The notes under the pieces: model-generated
What the model saw: only the letters and a program-made list of their open reading frames with translations
The model's database searches: none
What the model was told of the DNA's origin: nothing
Source of the DNA: Oculina patagonica
Lineage: Eukaryota
NCBI RefSeq assembly: GCF_052425735.1
Contig: NC_135766.1
Coordinates: forward strand, 27,342,001 to 27,406,000
Length of the DNA stretch: 64,000 nucleotides
Reading direction: 5' to 3'
Position numbers and translations under genes: made by a program
Shown here: piece by piece, positions 5,765 to 45,600 of the stretch
Layout of the letters: each line of letters opens with the position of its first letter
Position numbering within the stretch: position 1 is the stretch's first letter

Positions 5765-6680
5765 CTTAAATTCTATGTAAATGACATACTGTCTGAGAAA
5801 ACATGACATGTAGCCTGTAACCTGCTTGCGTCCGCAATATCAAAACCACCCGATTAAGGTAAACAGAAAGAAGTCAAATAACAATTAACACGATTCTAAC
5901 AGAGTGGCTGCTAGTAATACAGATATTTAAAGAAAGAAATGAAAAACTCAGACAAATGAAACGTCAGGGAGGGAGAGAGGGAGATAAAGAGAACTGACTA
6001 TGCTAAAATACAAATAAAATGCTAAAGTAAACTGTACGAGTTGCTTTGATCCAAGTATAATGCAAGAATGCCTGTGACCCCAAACTGGTGTTTGTTATTT
6101 AGGGACGGGCCATTATTTTCTTGGAGGGTGGTATGGAAAAAAAATTTCCTCTGCAAACTTTTTTTTTTTTTAGTTTATGTACCTCAGCAAACATTTTTTT
6201 AGAAATGCAAACTATGTTTTGTTATACTTATCTTGTTTGTAACCAATTTTATTTTGCCTTTATAGGTCCTGCACACAATTTTTTTCACCAAAAAATATTG
6301 GTCCGTCCCTTAGAAGCACAGATCACCCTACTATCGGCTGTTGGTTCCCATTTATTTTCGCACATTTTAAACGACCGGATTTAGGTACGCAGAAAGATAT
6401 AAATTTGGCGTATTTTTCCCATTCAGCGACCCCATCTCAGACTAAAAACTCTCAAAAGATGAGAACGGTCTTCAGTGTTGGACCGGAAGTGAACTACCGT
6501 GTGGCCCGTTCCCGTCTTTCCACGTGTCCTTTAGTGTGCAATACCGCTGACGCAGCGAATAGTGGCTTCACAAACAGTTGCCGGTATCGGTGACATGGCA
6601 AATTTGAGCTTCAGTGTTCTCACGCTTGCAAGCTTAGCCGGTCACAGATTGTTTTCTTTGTATCTTTACGTTACAGAAAC

Positions 6681-9600
6681 ATGTCCCTAGACTCTGAAGT
6701 ACGTAAAAGAACTGACATGACTGAAGAAATTGGCTCAGATCAAAATGGTGTAATAATCTCCTCTGAAAACACAATGAAGACCGCGTCATTCAAGCACAAT
6801 CGCAAATGGCTTCTTTTGAACACCCATGTCAACGCCGTGATGTATTCGTCGTGTTTTTGGGTTCAGATTGGTGTCCTGCCGGTAAGTGTGGATTTAGTAA
6901 ATAATTTAGTGAGTTATTAATGGAAATGCACTGTGTTTGAGAAGTTGCAGTATCAGATAACTTTGCAGGGAGATATTTATATTTTGCCAAATCAGTGATC
7001 AAATTATAACGCTGTAAAACGACATGAACAAGTAGCTACAAGTATTACATATTTTTGTTTTAAAATAAATTTGCACAGTACACATTTTTAAGATAGCTTA
7101 TATACCATATTTAAATCATAAAAACAAGCAATATCTCTTCAAGTCATATTTATGTTTACCCTCCAAATAAATTTAAGGAAATTTGACACCATTAATTATC
7201 TCCTCATTTAGAAAGAAAGATTGACTGACCGCAGCTGTCCAGACAGTTATTGACCTATATTGTTATCAACCTTAAACTATGCATCTTCCAGAAAAGGCTA
7301 AATTAAAGAACATCCTGACTTTGATGTACATCCCACTGAAGAACAGTATGGCCTAATTTGCAGACTTTGTCTTTATCTCTAAAATTCATTAGTTTGTTCT
7401 AGGTGACAATTGGTATGACAAAAAAAATAACGAGATCGTGTTATACACTTGCACTTATAGGAAAAATTTCAAACTTGGAAAGTATCTTCGCTTTACTCAA
7501 TTTCTTTTTTTTCTCATGCATCCCTGGTGTGCAGCTGCTATGTAAGGGTCCACCTTCCCCAGGGGGGACTCGCATATGAAAGTGACGGGGATGCTCGTTG
7601 TCTCGCTTAGGGTAGTAAATTTCGGATTTTTGGTCTCACTTAAGCTGTTCCAGGCAAAAAATCGCCAATATTTTTAGCCAGATATCGGTCATTGTTATAC
7701 GCCGATCACCCAATCACCGAAAATGAAATATACAGATACTTGGAATTATATCGCTCACTTCATCGGCGATAAATCGCAAGTGTGTCGCAGTGTGGGAAGG
7801 GGGTGGGGGGGGGGGAGTGGGAGCGTTATAAGGGTTAAAGAGCTTGGAGCCAGGGAGGGAGGAAGTTGATTCTCTTTGTGACAGGAAACAAGAGTACATT
7901 TTAAAATTTCCGACAAGCATCCCATGTTAGAATATCTAAGCACCCTGGTGACTGGTTGGGAAACGGGAGTAAAAGGTATGGGAGGGGGGAGTCCCTAGGG
8001 GGCAGAATCATGAAGGGTTATCAGAGATTTTTGAGAAGTGGAGGGATAGCACAAGAGGCAGGATTCCAACTAAGAAAGGACCTGGTAACTTGGGGTGGGG
8101 TGAGGTTGAAACTAAGAGAAGTACAAGAAGTTCAGATGCCCCTGTGTCCCACCTACTTGATTTCAAACACCTCTGAATTCTCCTGCCCTGTCCCCTGCCC
8201 CCTTGCTTTGACATGCAGAGAGTTCAAAACAAAACATCTTCTGTGGGAGGGGTATCAAACATTTTTGGAACCACGCAAAACCCATTAATTGTTTCAATTT
8301 TTGATTGGCTGTGACAGTTCCTTATAGAGATTTGAATCACTCCCAGTGTCAAAATGAAAACAAATCACAGTTATCAACTTCTCGAAATGCAGAAAAACTG
8401 TAAAAGTATTCATGAAAAATAAATCTGCAACAAATAAATTACATATTAACAAGGCTGTGCTCTTAGAAAAATTACAAGGAGCCCAAAGGTTTTAAAGTAT
8501 GAGATCCAGGGTGCCCAGCATAAAACTTTTTTGAAAGAAATAAGATTATCTGGTCGCCCAAAGACAAAAGTTAGTCGCCTGAGGCATCCGGGTGCCCTTA
8601 GAACACAGCCCTGATTTAGTTAAATAAGGTACTTGTAGGTTAACATTTAGTTAACAAACTTAGTTTGTCTTTTTTCAGTATTTATCAAAGAAGCTTGGAG
8701 CAGACCCAGTAGTGTTTGGATACCTTCAAACAACATTTGCTGTGGTACAGTTGTGTGGTGGACCATTATTTGGAAGATTTGGAGATATTTTTGGCAGCAG
8801 AGCAGCCTTGGTTCTGTCATTTGCTGCAGCAGCTTTAAGCTATTCCATTCTTGGATTAGCATCTACTGTAAGCATGTTGTTCCTTTCAAGACTTCCATCT
8901 GTTTTCATGCACGCGATGCAAGGTTAGTAGGTTGGTGGGAACACAGGGTACCCAGACTGACAACATGTTCAGATTTCTTTGGAATGTTGTAGCCAATGTG
9001 CTAAAGTGATACTAACTTAACAGCCATCCGTCCAGATGTCTGTAACTCTGGTGCCCTGTGGCCAAAAAACTCCACAAAAGCTCTTGCAAGCTTGTATTTA
9101 CAAGCTAGATTCATTCTTGAGATCTGAAGGTTTCCTGTCTCAAAGGCTTTTATATAGTAACACTCTGTCATTTCTATTATGATCAAATTTATATTCAGTT
9201 GAGGTTGTCACGTCATTATTAATTATTTTCCTTCCTTTATTGTCAAGATGAGTGATAAACAGCTAAACCTGTTCAAAAGATAGAAATGTTTAATATTGAA
9301 TAACTGATAAGCTTAAAACTTTCTGTGTGTATATTTTTACTTTCAGGATCGCAAATGGTTGTAACAGATATCTCAGACAAGGATGGTGAGAATATCAATG
9401 TTTTTACTACTTTAAAAAAAAACTAAAGTAAACAATTGGCTGAAATTTTAGATAACTGTTAACAACTGTTCATTATATCGACCTAATTATAACTTTAGAC
9501 AAAGTTGGGGTCAGATTTCCTGTATTATGCCTTCAGGCCTCATTACCAGTAAGACAATACCTCTCTGAAACCTCTATTTTCATTCGCCCACTGTAAACAC

Positions 9601-37057: not shown

Positions 37058-40000
37058 TTAGCGTTGTGGTAATGAATTGCTCTTTCCATCTCCTGCTTTT
37101 GCACCAGTACCTTCTCCGCTCTTGTTCTCTTTGCTGTTGAACTCGAGCTCTATGTAAGCACCTGGATTGCCTCGCCCTCTGTTAGGCCTATCAGGTATCC
37201 TAGGGGAACGTGATACATCGCTTCTCCCACGGGGGCGCTCATTCCCAGGGAAGTTTAACTCAAGAAAGTTGACTGACTCCTCCTTGTTCCTTTCCTTCCC
37301 AGACTGGGAATCTGGTAAGACCGCAGGTAATGAATGTCTTTTCAGTTCGTCGTTAGCACTTGTCTTTTTGTCTCCTTGATTCTCCGAACTCCCATCACTG
37401 GACAAAACACTGCTCTCTTCCTCGTCTTTAGCTTTCAATGAATCCAAATCTATTTCGGCGTATTCTGTGTGCTCTGTTGTGTGGGTGTCGCAGTAACGAT
37501 AATCAGAAGAAGGTTTAACTGTGCACACAACTAACTCTGGGCTTCCTTTGATAATTTCACTTATTTCTGATACTGAGCGCCCACCTAGTTCAATTCCATT
37601 GATATCAAGAATTTGGTCACCTGGTGAAGAAAAAAATTTAGATAAAAAAATTAAGACGGTTTCCGCTGAACAATATCGAGCAATAAAGGCAAAACTAAAG
37701 GTACCAAAACAAACGCATGGTATGGTCACAGTTTTTAATACAGTTAAGAAGAACTTATAGAAATTTTAACTTTTACGCTAACCCCACGCGAGAGATATGA
37801 ATTTGAAGATCTCCATATTTTAGTTAACAGTAGACGTTTCAGGTCAGTTCAAGACAAAATAACACACGTTTTAAGCCTTTTACAAGGTTTGACATTAAAT
37901 TTCTCGAGATTGCTTTAGAATTTCATAGCGGGGTCAATTGGAGAATGAATAACAGTGAGATGTCACCGTGCTATTAGTAGATTTTTGGTAATTAATTTTT
38001 GCACCTATTGCTCAAACATTAAGCTGAATCCGTCTTAATATTTTGTTGCTGTATATATTGCGGGCGGGGGGGGGGGGGGGAGGGGGGGACAGGGGGCTCT
38101 GTATTTCCCAGGTTTGCAGCTGACCTCCTGTCCCCTTCTACAATATTAACTTGAAAAAAAAGTTTCTAGAAAAATAAATACATCTCTTTTTTTTTTCATG
38201 ATAATTTGTCACAAAAAGTGTCTTGATGCATCATCAAATTCTCCAAGGTAACACTAAAAGAAATGTATGGGAGAAGTGGTGTCGTAAACTGGTATAAGGC
38301 AACTAAATCACTCGCTGAATACTTTTATTCACAATCCTTTTAATTGAAAACACTCTCGATAGAGTTCTTCATGTCTACTTTTCATTGTACAAAAAAAAAA
38401 ACAAGTCTCTTCTGTAATACTAGACGGCTTAGGTTACATGCATTTCATTGCCTGGGTAATATTTCGTGTTGCGCGGGTAACTAGGCCACAGTTTTTAATG
38501 TCACACAAGGTAACACCCTATCCGCAACAGTGGGGAGAATTGACCTACCGAGGACTACTAAAAAGCTGAGAGTAAATTGAAAATGAAGCAAAAGCTTGGT
38601 TTAGTAAAGGAAAAAATGAAAAAGAATTATTCATTGCATACTGTCATTCAGTTCACACGACTTTATAAAACATTATTGTATGAAAAATTTTGCAAGGAAA
38701 GTAAGTCTCCTATGGCTACCATCTGTTTTATTATGAAAAACAACATATAGCGACATTTCTTGTTGCGTCACATATTGAACAAAGATGGATAATGGTTGGC
38801 AAATTTGAATAACAAAACCAATTTGACTCCAGTGTTTATAAGCAGTAAACAATGCCATGTTATTCTTTACTACAAACTAATTGAAAGTTTCAGAATTCTA
38901 TGTTGCCGCAGTTTAATATGTTCTTACTACAGATCTGACCAACTTTTTCGGCTGTTCCAAAAAAATATACATTTTAATATTTTATATTAAACCAAGAGTT
39001 AAAAATTTGTTCAAAACATTATATTATGTCCACGATACCTTTAAAAGGACCAAGCAATTGAAAAATAAACAAGTTTTAATATCAGCAGTGGTACAGCATA
39101 ATTTTGTATTTTGCACAAACAGATGCAAATTATATTTTAGAAATTGTTCAGCATATTGAAAGTAATATAAATAATGAAAACTTCTAGCTCCATACGCAAT
39201 TCCCTTGACGTATTTTTGATTACTGACGCATTAATTTTTTTTTTCTTCAAAAGTGATAATAAAAGATAAGCTTGTTTTGAAACGACAATATTGAAATTAT
39301 GCTCAGAAAAACATTAACTGCGAACTTTAATTTTAAAATAACCTATTTTACTGCCATTTTGGGGAAATAACTTTCACGTCAAATTTATTCTTTCAGACGA
39401 AAAACCGCGGAAATTTGCAGTGAAGCGAAAATTTTGCGTGAATTTCGTGTCGTACGGCAATTAATTTGCATGCGGAAATTAGCAGATGCAAGCTTATTTT
39501 GACTTTGAATGAGTTGAAGATTTGACAATTAGAGCTGACAAAAGAACAATACATAAAATGTGTTCATTTCTAAATGTGAGCCGTAGTTAACGAGGCGAGA
39601 ACGAATTCAGGGCGTCTTTGGTAAACTACAGCTGAAACATTAAACTTTGACAACTAAACGAAAGTCTACGTTCTGAATGACGACAGCACCTGTGCGTTCG
39701 GGAACAAATTCAATTCTTCTTTCATTGAAGTAACTTCGGTTTCTATTTACTGGTTAAATTTGAGAATATTACCCTGAGTGACTTCGCATTTAGCCATGTA
39801 AACCGATTGTGTGGCCATCTATAAACTAATCGCTCGTATTAGAGCCAAATTCGACAGCGAATGAAACGACTTCTTTACCAATTGCAAGCAAGTCCGCCTA
39901 CAGAGTGTTTGAAGTCAGGTGTTATCCAAGATAAACACGAACTGGTGCCACAGAAAATAACACTAGATTAGAATCTCCAACAAACTAGGTGCTGTTCTAA

Positions 40001-40589
40001 CTTGTCAGGTTTCATAAAACATTAAAGAACAAACTTTTGAATTAAATGATTGAAGCTTACCCGGTCGCAGAATTCCAGATGTTGAAACAGGCCCGTCTTC
40101 GAGAATTCGGTTGACAAAGATCACTCCACCGACATTTTTAATTGTGCATCCCAGCCCCTGGCCTTTCTCTCTTTGGATCGTTATCCGCTTTAGCCCTCCG
40201 GTTAACTTCGTGCTTTTTCTTCTAACTGGGTCGGTTTCTTCTTCTTTGAGTTCATTCTCTTTAGCTGTCTGCACGGATAGCATCCAGAGCTCCCTATCCA
40301 ACTCGGAACTGCAACAGAAGCTGAAGAAAGGCTTCCCTTCTACGATCAGATTAAAACAATGCTTTCTCTTCTTGGTTTCAAACTTTTCAGTGGTTTCTAT
40401 GTCCACCAAAAATATCCGAGCTTCTGCAGTTCGCCCGCGTTTCTGATCATCTTCTTTCTTGAATGTGCACAACATCTGTCTGTTTAGAACAACGAATCGA
40501 GGACGCCATTGCTTCAGCAGGCTGGTTTTCTTTTGAAGAATTCCTTCTTTGATTACTCGCTTCTTCATCTTCCTATCTTGCTCTGCCAT
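37058..40589 (-). CDS. PH domain + PDZ domain adaptor protein (363 aa); exons 40589-40061, 37620-37058
   Basis: PH motifs IKEGILQKK..LLKQWRPRFVVL and DRELWMLSV. PDZ motifs ITIQREKGQGLGCTI, IFVNRILEDGPV..SGILRPGDQILDING, spliced across a phase-1 intron. Total 1092 nt. Confidence 0.85.
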
Positions 40590-42604: not shown

Positions 42605-45600
42605 TTATGATTGTTGTGGCTGAGTAGCCTGATGTTCTGTAGGCATGGAGCGAATTATGTCCGAGTCACCAGGATCAGTGATACTGAGGACTGACACACG
42701 GAAGTACTTGCCGCAAGCTGTTCCAAGTTCAATGTTGTTGCCGGTGTAATGATGGACTCCAGTCTTGGCCAACATGGCATAGTACTCAATCTCACTTTTC
42801 CTGTAAACAAAAACATGGAAAATTATAGCAATGTCATGCTATCCTTTATAGCTCATTGGTAATGTACATTTGTGACCTAGCCATTACATCATTACTTCTT
42901 TATTTATTTAATTGAAAAAAAAAAAGCAAGCAAGAACTTCAATTCAGCATTTCCTTAAGCCCAATCCTGTCAGGCAAGATGCTCCAAAGGATGTTAATCC
43001 AAAAACCTGCCAGAAATCAACAACATTTTTCCTCTTTAAGAGCAGCATGTACACAATGTGTACACCTAAAAAGTTTTTAGACAACCTTACACAAAACAGC
43101 TGTTTGTGCGTGCAAAACGTTAGAGGTTTACATTAAGGTTTAGCAATGAGTCACTTGAATTCCAAAAGACAAGAGATAAAGATTGCGGGTGATTCACTGA
43201 AGAAAAGTTTTGAATTTTAAAGGTACTTAATGAACCCATGTTTAAAAGGGCAGCAAAATGAATGCAAATGGCAATTTCTAACCAGTTACAGGGCAGTAAA
43301 TAAGGTATTGTCGCCAGTCTTGTAAGCAGATTGACTTGTTATTACCTGAGCTGGGGAGTGTTATTTGAGATTATAACAAGCTTTGCCTTGCCCTGTCGAA
43401 GTGTCTTGAGAGTGGACTTGTATCCTAACGTGAACTTTCCACTCTTCATCACAAGAGCAAGACGAGAGTTAATACTCTCCATTGCCTTTTTCTACAAAAG
43501 AAAACATACAAGATTAAATTACCAGTTTGCTGACAACTGATTAGAGTTTTCTACAGCAAAAACTAGTACACTGTTACAGATGATTTCAGTTTACTTTGGC
43601 CGCCCGCTTTGCGAAGTTCGTGGGAAATTAGAACCTTTGTTACAAGTTGCCAATTATGTTGCGAAGTTTGCGAATCAAATTGCGAACTTCGATATAAAGT
43701 TCCCAACTTTGGCCCGACTGAACTTTCCAAGTTTGGTAGTTGAGAAGAAACAAGACATGTTGCTTGAAAGTCATGGCGATATCCAAACTCGATGATTTTT
43801 GAACTGGTCAAGGAAAGTTGAAGTAGCTTGAAGTGTAAGACAACGTTTTGCATCAGCGATCACGCAAGTGATTTGCGGATAAATAAATTTTATGCATGCA
43901 GAAATTTGGTGAAATTTTAACTTTTTTTGTATAAAAATACACATTTAACGATTTCTGTGAGGCATCGTCATCAATTTCAAGTCTTCTGCGTTTGTAAGCC
44001 GAATAAACCTAGATGGTTTACCCATATGTAAAATTGATTTTAATAGAAGCCGACGCGATGCGACAGAGAAGACTAGACAATATGTTTACGGCTCGCTGAA
44101 CATAAAAGTTTTCGAACCTTCTTTACTTTTATTTTTATGACATTTGTTTCTAACAGTTTAGCGTAGCAAAGCCCTTTTTGATAACATAATTACAGAAGGT
44201 TTTAATAAATTCGGGCTGAAGTTGGGAACTTTGTATCGAAGTTCGCAGTTTGATTCGCAAATGTCACAATGTAATTGGCAACTTCGTAACAAAGTTTCCA
44301 ATTTCCCAACAAACTTCGCAAAGTGGGCGGCCAAAGTAAACTGAAATCAACTGTAAGACCATAATTCCTGGAACAACAGGATTAACTACAATTGCAAAAG
44401 TTGTTATTCTGAGTACAAACAAATAGCACACCTTTGCGGCACGTGACTTTTGTAGTACACGATGGTTGTGCCAAGCAAAAATTTTGCGCAAAACTCTCAT
44501 TATTGAACATTTCTTAGGTTGTGATTGACACAGAGTTTTCTTAAGTCTGGTTCTCATATGATTGCCCTGATCGTTTCTATCATATTGATCATTTGCAAAT
44601 ACTGAGGCGATCGTAGGTGATCAAAGCNNNNNNNNNNNNNNNNNNNNNNNNNNNNNNNNNNNNNNNNNNNNNNNNNNNNNNNNNNNNNNNNNNNNNNNNN
44701 NNNNNNNNNNNNNNNNNNNNNNNNNNNNNNNNNNNNNNNNNNNNNNNNNNNNNNNNACGATCGCCTGGTATGAGCGAAGACCTACCAAAAACAATCATTT
44801 TAGCCCTAGATCCAAAACAATGACAGCCTTCAATGAAAGAGCAAAACTTGTGGCCTCATATATTTTCTGTTATTACAGTTGTATGGCAAGGAAGGGTTAG
44901 AGAAGCTAGAAGGATAGAACGAGGGTGATCCAAGTGATCCAATCGCCACAGACGTCACTGTGCGCTTGTGTAATGTTGTCATATAATCTCCCCGATTGCA
45001 AGAAAGACAAAGACAAAGGTGATAGAAACGATCAGGGTGATTATATGAGAACCAGCCTTTGAGAATGTGCTAACAATTTTCTCGTACAAGACATTATATT
45101 AAACACTACTGTCACATATTGATGTGTCAAATTGCAAGGAAACAGGAAAGGAATATGAGGAATGGAATAAATATATAATTTGTCACATTTAACGTTTGAC
45201 AAACTTTTAAACATGTGAGTAGTAAGCATATTTCAAAGCTAAATACAGTCAACTCTCTCATAATGGACACCTCTATAAGACGGACACCTTCATAAGACGG
45301 ACACCTGGTGATGGTCCCTGCTGTTTTTCAGTCATTTTACTGTAACCAAACTCCCTATAAGACGGACACCTCTCTTAGACGGACAACGGACACTTTGAAA
45401 TAATCAACGGACACTTAAGAAGTGTTTTTTTTTATCATGTTATATCGCTAAAGCAAAGTTAGTCAGTGCCCAAAGAATACGTGTATACCAAGCTAACTAA
45501 CCAAAAACAACAAAGCTTCCCTGCTTACGTGAAGCAGTGAATTATCGATTGTAAAGAAAAACGAGTCAATTTTCTGATACTATTGATGTCCCAGTTTGTA

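Follow-up and report, generated by a model that had tools for sequence, protein, structure and literature searches.

Does the coral Oculina patagonica carry a docking protein of the kind that couples receptor tyrosine kinases to the phosphatase SHP2, built around a PDZ domain? The question is raised by a minus-strand gene in a 64,000-nucleotide stretch of its genome (the window; NCBI RefSeq assembly GCF_052425735.1, contig NC_135766.1, positions 27,342,001 to 27,406,000 of the forward strand), whose own numbering is used throughout. A preliminary description, made from the letters of the window, had noticed PH and PDZ domains followed by a low-complexity tail that contains TEYAEIDL, VNFLELNF, and AYIELEF (hereafter motifs 1, 2, and 3), and had proposed SHP2 docking in the manner of IRS, Gab, and FRS2. 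Receptor tyrosine kinase signaling in Bilateria depends heavily on multi-site docking proteins (Gab, IRS, FRS2, and Dok). The coupling of receptors to SHP2 (Csw) in nonbilaterian animals is poorly known, and a conserved PH-PDZ adaptor would be a concrete candidate for it. Here, we report that the locus is a real, expressed gene for a 363-amino-acid cytosolic scaffold and that its tail tyrosine motifs are conserved in a cnidarian and sponge protein family.

Gene model and domains

The two coding exons are minus-strand open reading frames [40005-40589(-) and 37058-37729(-)] of one two-exon gene; joined in frame, they give a coding sequence of 1,092 nucleotides, which with its intron spans 37058-40589. 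Beyond the last base of exon 1, 40061, the sequence reads GTAAGC (GT donor at 40060); exon 2 begins at 37620, the letters before it being ...TTCACCAG (AG acceptor at 37622-37621). An in-frame TAA lies 27 nucleotides 5′ of the ATG, the N-terminal start point is identical in the relative P0001, and the C-terminus agrees with those of relatives ending in ...SLPRR or ...SLPRS. Contigs of two public runs (X2 and X3) carry the joint 37618^40059 (cut +2), which skips 2,440 bases and reads CT..AC on the plus strand, and one 1,738-nucleotide contig from a public run covers both exons with the intron spliced out. The RNA nature of these runs is only guessed; the intron-free form of the contigs is what a spliced transcript would give. 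The gene is single-copy in its own genome, the rest of the matches being to unrelated PH domains (about 30% identity).

Within the intron, contig depth in all three contig runs rises to hundreds or thousands at 37868-38115, with many loose ends (a depth spike is marked at 37992-38115), and the jump and the loose ends together point to a repeated element around 37868-38115.

The locus might have been a part of a larger PH/PDZ gene (syntrophin, CNK, or PDZPH1-like), a chance open reading frame, or a pseudogene, and language-model look-alikes do include syntrophins and larger PH+PDZ clusters (scores of 0.85-0.90, leads only). We rejected this reading as extremely improbable on the upstream stop, the shared termini, and the spliced contig; moreover, the PH domain is unbroken and comes ahead of the PDZ domain (syntrophins have a split PH), the tandem is unmatched in Swiss-Prot, and the gene is single-copy. 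The concern that the protein might be only a piece of some larger PH/PDZ family already known is answered by its being a complete member of a small family with shared termini.

Pfam and the spliced translation agree with the architecture first described, with the two halves of the PDZ domain found by Pfam on opposite sides of the intron; the entire protein consists of PH domain, PDZ domain, and disordered tail, and a hydrophobic segment is absent. A full-length hydrozoan relative (P0006) was modeled with AlphaFold2 from a 12-sequence family alignment, giving PH and PDZ domains with a predicted local distance difference test score (pLDDT) of >90, confidence lasting until the PDZ domain ends, with a tail that is disordered (pLDDT, <50).

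The closest fold to the PH domain was the TAPP1 PH domain (1eaz, binding phosphatidylinositol 3,4-bisphosphate), with a template modeling (TM) score by target of 0.88, followed by DAPP1 bound to inositol tetrakisphosphate (1fao), Akt1/3, and ARAP3, likewise bound to inositol tetrakisphosphate; neither Gab nor IRS was among the best PDB matches by sequence and fold, which were PLEKHA3, Akt, TAPP1, and DAPP1. Its basic signature, K20...W28-R29-P30-R31, aligned ungapped to K14...W22-R23-P24-R25 of Akt1, residues that we take to contact the 3- and 4-phosphates. The signature Lys and the last Arg/Lys are conserved family-wide, and the mark of 3-phosphoinositide PH domains, K...[R/K]-x-R and then a hydrophobic pair (here F32-V33), is present. 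The domain thus appears to be of the 3-phosphoinositide-binding type (TAPP1, DAPP1, and Akt), and lipid binding is predicted. For the PDZ domain, the closest folds were those of PALS1, CASK, MPP7, and PSD-95 PDZ3; PALS1, the best sequence match (E value, 8e-12), shares the Val at alphaB1, where PSD-95 PDZ3 has His. A hydrophobic residue at alphaB1 goes with class II ligands (hydrophobic-x-hydrophobic C-terminus), so the Val suggests a class II-like PDZ domain, with a predicted ligand of that class.

Conserved tyrosine motifs in the tail

In an alignment of 21 anthozoan tails (A2), the sequence is variable save for sharp, near-invariant islands: T-[ED]-Y-A-E-[IL]-D-[LM], K-R-H-S-L-P, x-N-[Y/F]-L-E-L-N-F-P, R-P-R-x-x-S...S-R-S-P, A-Y-[IV]-E-[LV]-[ED]-F, and a C-terminal K-S-x-S-L-P. 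The Tyr of motif 1 is constant in all 20 tails that cover it, and the Y, E, and F of motif 3 are invariant in 21/21. Three matches to the pattern [YF][AILVT][EDQ][ILV][DEN][LFW] occur in the 148-amino-acid coral tail, a number reached by none of 200,000 shuffles of it (maximum of two, once).

The conservation that the preliminary description had asked about extends beyond Anthozoa, to other cnidarians and to sponges. No cnidarian or sponge sequence with motif 1 or motif 3 departs from Tyr in it. In both groups, motif 1 always lies 12 to 17 amino acids past the PDZ domain, and hydrozoan-type and sponge sequences have it as TAYTEVDP, TPYIKVDP, IIYSTIAP, VDYAQIDY, or PNYAVLDY. A middle motif is often present in these sequences (TPYAELNV or TSYTTVNI), and near the C-terminus stand TNYAELEF, TSYAQLEF, LTYAELNW, or VNYVELEW, the distal motif x-Y-[AVI]-[EQ]-L-x-[FW] being found in hydrozoans and sponges as well. 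The pairing by which we recognize the family, a proximal [T/S/I/V]xYxx[I/V/L] with a distal x-Y-[AVIL]-[EQ]-L-x-[FW], is represented in the coral protein by TEYAEI and AYIELEF. Hydrozoan-type tyrosines are spaced 17 to 30 amino acids apart, and motifs 2 and 3 are 37 amino acids apart in corals that keep the middle Tyr; such spacings agree with those of known bidentate SHP2 ligands.

The flank pattern was then held fixed and position 0 left free in cnidarian and sponge sequences. Tyr filled position 0 in 52/52 motif 1 matches and in 82 of the 85 matches of the motif 2/3 type (Phe in 2 and a chance Glu in 1; never Trp), and position +5 of the latter varied (F, 66; P, 13; L, 4; W, 2). That position 0 is nearly always Tyr while +5 varies argues that tyrosine is specifically required, rather than any aromatic residue. 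In motif 1, Thr stands at −2 in 40/52 sequences, and Ile or Val stands at +3 in 48/52. The ITSM (immunoreceptor tyrosine-based switch motif) has the consensus TxYxxV/I, and the ITIM (immunoreceptor tyrosine-based inhibitory motif) has S/I/V/L/TxYxxI/V/L (PMC8631942). By consensus, motif 1 is an ITSM, or otherwise an ITIM, and the coral TEYAEI fits the former, as had been proposed.

Fit to the SHP2 pattern

High-affinity ligands of the SHP2 N-SH2 domain carry hydrophobic residues at −2, +1, +3, and +5 and acidic ones at +2 and +4, as in Gab1 QVE-pY-LDLDL, IRS-1 GLN-pY-IDLDL, and Gab2 SVD-pY-LALDF (PMC8007070). The coral motifs (-Y-AEIDL, -[Y/F]-LELNF, and -Y-IELEF) all fit at +1, +2 (Glu), +3, and +5; motifs 1 and 3 are also acidic at +4, where motif 2 has Asn. 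Position −2 is hydrophobic in motif 2 only (Val), and motif 1 has Thr there. The suggested likeness to IRS/Gab-style docking motifs is thus upheld as a consensus fit to the N-SH2 pattern.

A candidate partner is encoded in the same genome by an SH2-SH2-PTP gene [G000:C6:24359902-24373672 (+); also L004:879-1025, 6225-6419, and 7652-7864]. For its N-SH2 exons, human PTPN11 (E values, 2e-33 and 9e-39) is a closer match than PTPN6 (SHP1), and on this comparison the gene is a well-conserved SHP2/Csw orthologue. In a study of Hydra, Shp2/Csw was expressed, and FRS2 homologues were found only in Bilateria (PMC7260276).

The motifs could also be phosphotyrosine docking sites read mainly by other SH2 proteins. 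Candidates are Src-family kinases or Csk (YAEI being near pYEEI), an SHIP-type phosphatase, or a SAP/SH2D1A-like adaptor reading TxYxx[V/I]. At least 52 exon matches to SH2 domains are present in the genome, motif 1 conforms exactly to the ITSM, a class that also binds SH2D1A and SH2D1B (PMC8631942), and the YEDP-type motifs of the relative P0012 (below) would suit a different SH2 class. We nonetheless judge this reading unlikely, since high-affinity N-SH2 ligands of SHP2 are listed with this full pattern from −2 to +5, acidic at +2/+4 and hydrophobic or aromatic at +5 (PMC8007070), and a layout of two or three motifs suits a tandem-SH2 reader.

Tyrosine-to-phenylalanine change in motif 2

The codon TTT at 37265-37267 encodes Phe295 in motif 2, which had been taken for a disabled VNYLELNF site. 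As suspected, the residue is Tyr in related species: 18/21 anthozoan tails have [VLIM]x-Y-LELxF (several exactly VNYLELNF, also VDYLELNF and LQYLELEF), and the window, P0261, and P0266 alone carry Phe. A maximum-likelihood tree groups these three sequences in a single clade (support, 93/98), so the simplest account is that Tyr was replaced by Phe once. The codon is uniform in contigs of three runs with three organism labels, which indicates that the Phe is real and fixed in the clade rather than an assembly error. The change removes the phospho-acceptor at motif 2; "disabled" is therefore apt for the capacity to be phosphorylated, but less so for the motif as a whole, whose flanks are intact in the Phe clade and which may have a phospho-independent role.

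Such a role could belong to all of the motifs, as hydrophobic/aromatic docking motifs [Y/F]-x-[E/Q]-L-x-[F/W] bound by a partner domain or, within the protein itself, by PH or PDZ, with the Phe then neutral. An aromatic-x-x-Leu function of this kind could explain both the retention of every flank in a three-taxon coral clade and the Q/R-N-F-D-E-L-E of crinoid relatives at the place where cnidarians have Q-N-Y-A-E-L-D, and the set distance of motif 1 from the PDZ domain is what an intramolecular extension might have. Set against this are the near-constancy of Tyr at position 0 with free exchange at +5, the AlphaFold2 model of P0006, in which motif 1 (residues 224-239; pLDDT, <50) is not packed on the PDZ domain, and the fact that one base suffices to turn Tyr into Phe, the usual route by which phospho-sites are lost. 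On balance, we find phospho-independent docking rather improbable. None of the three motifs appears to fit the extended pattern of the LC3-interacting region. An AP-2 YxxPhi sorting signal was dismissed as unlikely, the protein being soluble.

Family and distribution

An exhaustive phmmer search with exon 1 as the query gave 29 matches at ≤1e-10. Many were open reading frame-type calls that end at the intron; full-length ones had 270 to 440 amino acids, with PH and then PDZ domains, and E values to family members over both domains ranged from 1e-92 to 1e-20. The nearest relatives are anthozoan. Members include Actinostola KAK3697755 (Anthozoa) and Ephydatia KAL5493173 (a sponge), both annotated "hypothetical protein"; the hydrozoans Hydra vulgaris ("uncharacterized protein LOC105844333") and Hydractinia (XP_057309939, misnamed "probable serine/threonine-protein kinase DDB_G0272282"); and the sponge Oscarella (EP00118_P026794). 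The family arrangement, a contiguous N-terminal PH domain with one PDZ domain directly after it in a chain of about 300 to 440 amino acids, is that of the coral protein. Fold searches of Swiss-Prot, PDB, and Atlas matched the two domains separately and did not find the same tandem, no Swiss-Prot model having this arrangement (TM score, at most 0.34), and literature searches on the PH-PDZ family, including the Hydra locus name, found no description. It is an unnamed family at least as old as the common ancestor of sponges and cnidarians.

In exhaustive phmmer and two profile searches, the only bilaterian matches were more divergent PH-PDZ relatives from echinoderms, namely two crinoids (Anneissia and Antedon) and sea urchins of the genus Diadema (one isoform of these relatives is misnamed "dishevelled homolog mig-5-like"); word-based searches scored only 8,000 candidates each, so further members may exist elsewhere. 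Other matches of 340 to 375 amino acids were rejected as dual-PH proteins. An arthropod PH+PDZ cluster of 368 amino acids in the ESM Atlas (score, 0.88-0.89) is a lead only. The echinoderm proteins P0078 (Diadema) and P0228 and P0279 (crinoids) keep echoes of the coral tail, namely an RPRPLS site, a C-terminal ...KNLSLP (the terminus of sea urchin P0078), and N-F-D-E-L-E.

Two further members differ in other ways. P0012 and its cluster (L003:3001-4533; 633 to 673 amino acids) have a PH-PDZ head as in the coral and a tail of about 10 repeats of [HT][VIT]YEDP (R-P-H-V-Y-E-D-P or E-H-T-Y-E-D-P), the tail-coding part fetched from L003 being a single open frame. A different Tyr motif seems to have expanded in the tail of this one lineage, and such repeats on a PH-PDZ chassis lend extra support to the idea of a phosphotyrosine scaffold. 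P0021 (L001:3001-3951) is an intronless member with the motifs SSYTKVAP and LHYVELD; its contig is very gene-dense, with MPC, FAD-oxidase, WD40, and MSP genes adjoining, which suggests a host with a compact genome.

Proposed mechanism and significance

We give about an even chance to the view that the protein is a membrane-recruited, phosphoinositide 3-kinase-responsive, PDZ-anchored phosphotyrosine docking adaptor. Its PH domain, of the TAPP1/DAPP1/Akt type, would target it to membranes rich in 3-phosphoinositides, and its class II-like PDZ domain would tether it to a membrane protein, possibly a receptor, by that protein's C-terminal tail. Tyrosine kinases would then modify its tail at one ITSM-type TxYxx[I/V] near the PDZ domain and, distally, at one or two x-Y-[AILV]-[EQ]-L-x-[FW] motifs. 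The phosphorylated motifs would attract SH2 proteins, most likely the tandem-SH2 phosphatase SHP2/Csw, which could be held by two motifs simultaneously and would probably be activated by this two-site engagement. The Ser motifs KRHSLP, RPRGRS, and KSNSLP would probably add control by kinases and 14-3-3 proteins, and in the coral's clade one phospho-acceptor would have been lost when the middle Tyr was replaced, once, by Phe.

Several points weigh against this proposal. Tail phosphorylation and SHP2 binding are, for all family members, predictions from sequence, just as the lipid specificity of the PH domain and the class of the PDZ domain are predicted from resemblance. Motif 3 of the coral has Gly at −2, neither hydrophobic nor Thr, where other lineages have T, L, or V, and Yxx[ILV] with acidic flanks also suits SH2 domains of the Src-family, Csk, SHIP, or SAP-like kinds. 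The Tyr motifs are absent from the echinoderm relatives, so that any motif function is not family-wide; Phe is tolerated amid intact flanks in the coral's clade, and crinoid relatives have Phe as well. The docking-protein interpretation of the preliminary description is accordingly supported in part: in its favor are the conservation of the motifs, the Tyr in relatives, the complete small family, the fit to the SHP2 pattern, and the SHP2 orthologue in the genome.

A broader proposal, that the family is an ancestral metazoan docking adaptor lending SHP2/Csw-recruiting ITSM/ITIM-like sites to membrane proteins through its PDZ domain, is one that we put forward tentatively and would bet against rather than for. 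If true, a Gab/FRS2-like node would have been built from different parts in sponges and cnidarians, which lack FRS2 (PMC7260276), and the pairing of ITIM/ITSM with SHP2 would long predate vertebrate immunoreceptors. In the coral clade, the Tyr-to-Phe change would then have knocked out one SHP2 contact naturally, at a single site, and, with coral clades differing naturally between Tyr and Phe, the two states are there to be compared.

Feature coordinates

The features of the gene are collected in Table 1. The serine motifs of the tail may be kinase (PKA/Akt) and 14-3-3 sites, as their sequences suggest; among them, exon 2 residues R128, P129, R130, S133, and P139 do not vary in the alignment of anthozoan tails. 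Elsewhere in the window, a run of 129 Ns at 44628-44756 is an assembly gap or masked sequence.

Table 1. Positions in the window of the exons, domains, and tail motifs of the PH-PDZ gene
Feature	Position	Strand	Remarks
Coding exon 1	40061..40589	-	ATG at 40589; amino acids 1-176 and first base of Gly177; PH domain and N-terminal PDZ half
PH domain	40263..40556	-	Amino acids 12-109; Pfam PF00169, E value 1.8e-15
Basic beta1-beta2 signature of PH	40494..40532	-	K20-K21...W28-R29-P30-R31-F32
PDZ, N-terminal half	40062..40193	-	Amino acids 133-176; Pfam PF00595, partial match; carboxylate-binding loop G-L-G-C, amino acids 145-148
Intron	37621..40060	-	2,440 bp, GT..AG, phase 1; splits PDZ domain
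Coding exon 2	37058..37620	-	C-terminal PDZ half, disordered tail, TAA stop at 37060-37058
PDZ, C-terminal half	37511..37620	-	Amino acids 177-213; Val at alphaB1
Motif 1, H-T-E-Y230-A-E-I-D-L	37445..37471	-	TEYAEIDL, amino acids 228-235; TxYxxI; 16 residues past PDZ end
K-R-H-S-L-P	37325..37342	-	Basophilic Ser motif, 14-3-3-like; R, S, and P invariant, K, H, and L nearly so (21 anthozoan tails)
Motif 2, S-V-N-F295-L-E-L-N-F-P	37247..37276	-	VNFLELNF, amino acids 293-300
R-P-R-G-R-S-D-V-S-R-S-P-R	37199..37237	-	RxRxxS (Akt-type) site, then S-P site
Motif 3, G-A-Y332-I-E-L-E-F	37139..37162	-	AYIELEF, amino acids 331-337
C-terminal K-S-N-S-L-P-Q-R	37061..37084	-	Like 14-3-3 mode-1 site; nearly invariant in scleractinian-like tails

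Comparison with known systems

Syntrophins, which are among the top feature-based and fold-based look-alikes, resemble the coral protein as small scaffolds of PH and PDZ domains. Theirs, however, is a PDZ domain inside a split PH1, followed by PH2 and SU, whereas the coral PH domain is contiguous and a second one is absent; syntrophins are without a conserved Tyr-motif tail, and the fold matches to them are weak (TM score, about 0.26).

Closer in their PH fold are the PH adaptors of the phosphoinositide 3-kinase pathway, DAPP1/Bam32, TAPP1/2, and PLEKHS1, with TAPP1 and DAPP1 the nearest and PLEKHS1 clusters the top feature-based look-alikes of P0006 (0.90). PLEKHS1 and DAPP1 are PH-domain adaptors controlled through a phosphorylated tail tyrosine (for PLEKHS1, see bioRxiv 10.1101/2023.05.18.541123). 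The likeness is seen at the PH fold only: PLEKHS1, DAPP1, and TAPP1/2 are without a PDZ domain (TAPP1/2 carry a C-terminal PDZ ligand instead), and the Tyr motifs of this group belong to other classes (YxxM in PLEKHS1).

With the ITIM/ITSM receptors (PD-1, PECAM-1, SIRP-alpha, and BTLA), the family shares [S/I/V/L/T]xYxx[I/V/L], motif 1 being an exact ITSM in most members; in the coral, TEYAEI meets the consensus, and motif 2 would do so as VNYLEL but has Phe. Hydrozoan-type members, with two motifs about 17 to 30 residues apart, are like the ITIM-ITSM pairs that engage both SH2 domains of SHP2. Those receptors are transmembrane and mostly vertebrate-immune, unlike this soluble PH-PDZ protein of sponges and cnidarians.

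The comparison that bears most directly on the question is with Gab/DOS and IRS (Gab1 pY627/pY659 and IRS-1 pY1172/pY1222), which likewise have an N-terminal PH domain of 3-phosphoinositide type and then a disordered tail. Paired SHP2-type Tyr motifs are a further likeness, at the consensus level only (Gab2 SVD-Y-LALDF versus SVN-Y-LELNF of the coral family). Homology with the coral protein is nevertheless limited to the generic PH fold, a PDZ domain stands between its PH domain and tail, and it has about one-third to one-quarter of their size. Its tail is without YxxM (p85), YxN (Grb2), and Met-binding or Grb2-SH3-binding regions, its only tail tyrosines being those of YAEI and YIEL, and a PTB or IRS domain was not found by Pfam. 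We read the PH-PDZ adaptor as a variant of the Gab/IRS docking-protein type not previously described.

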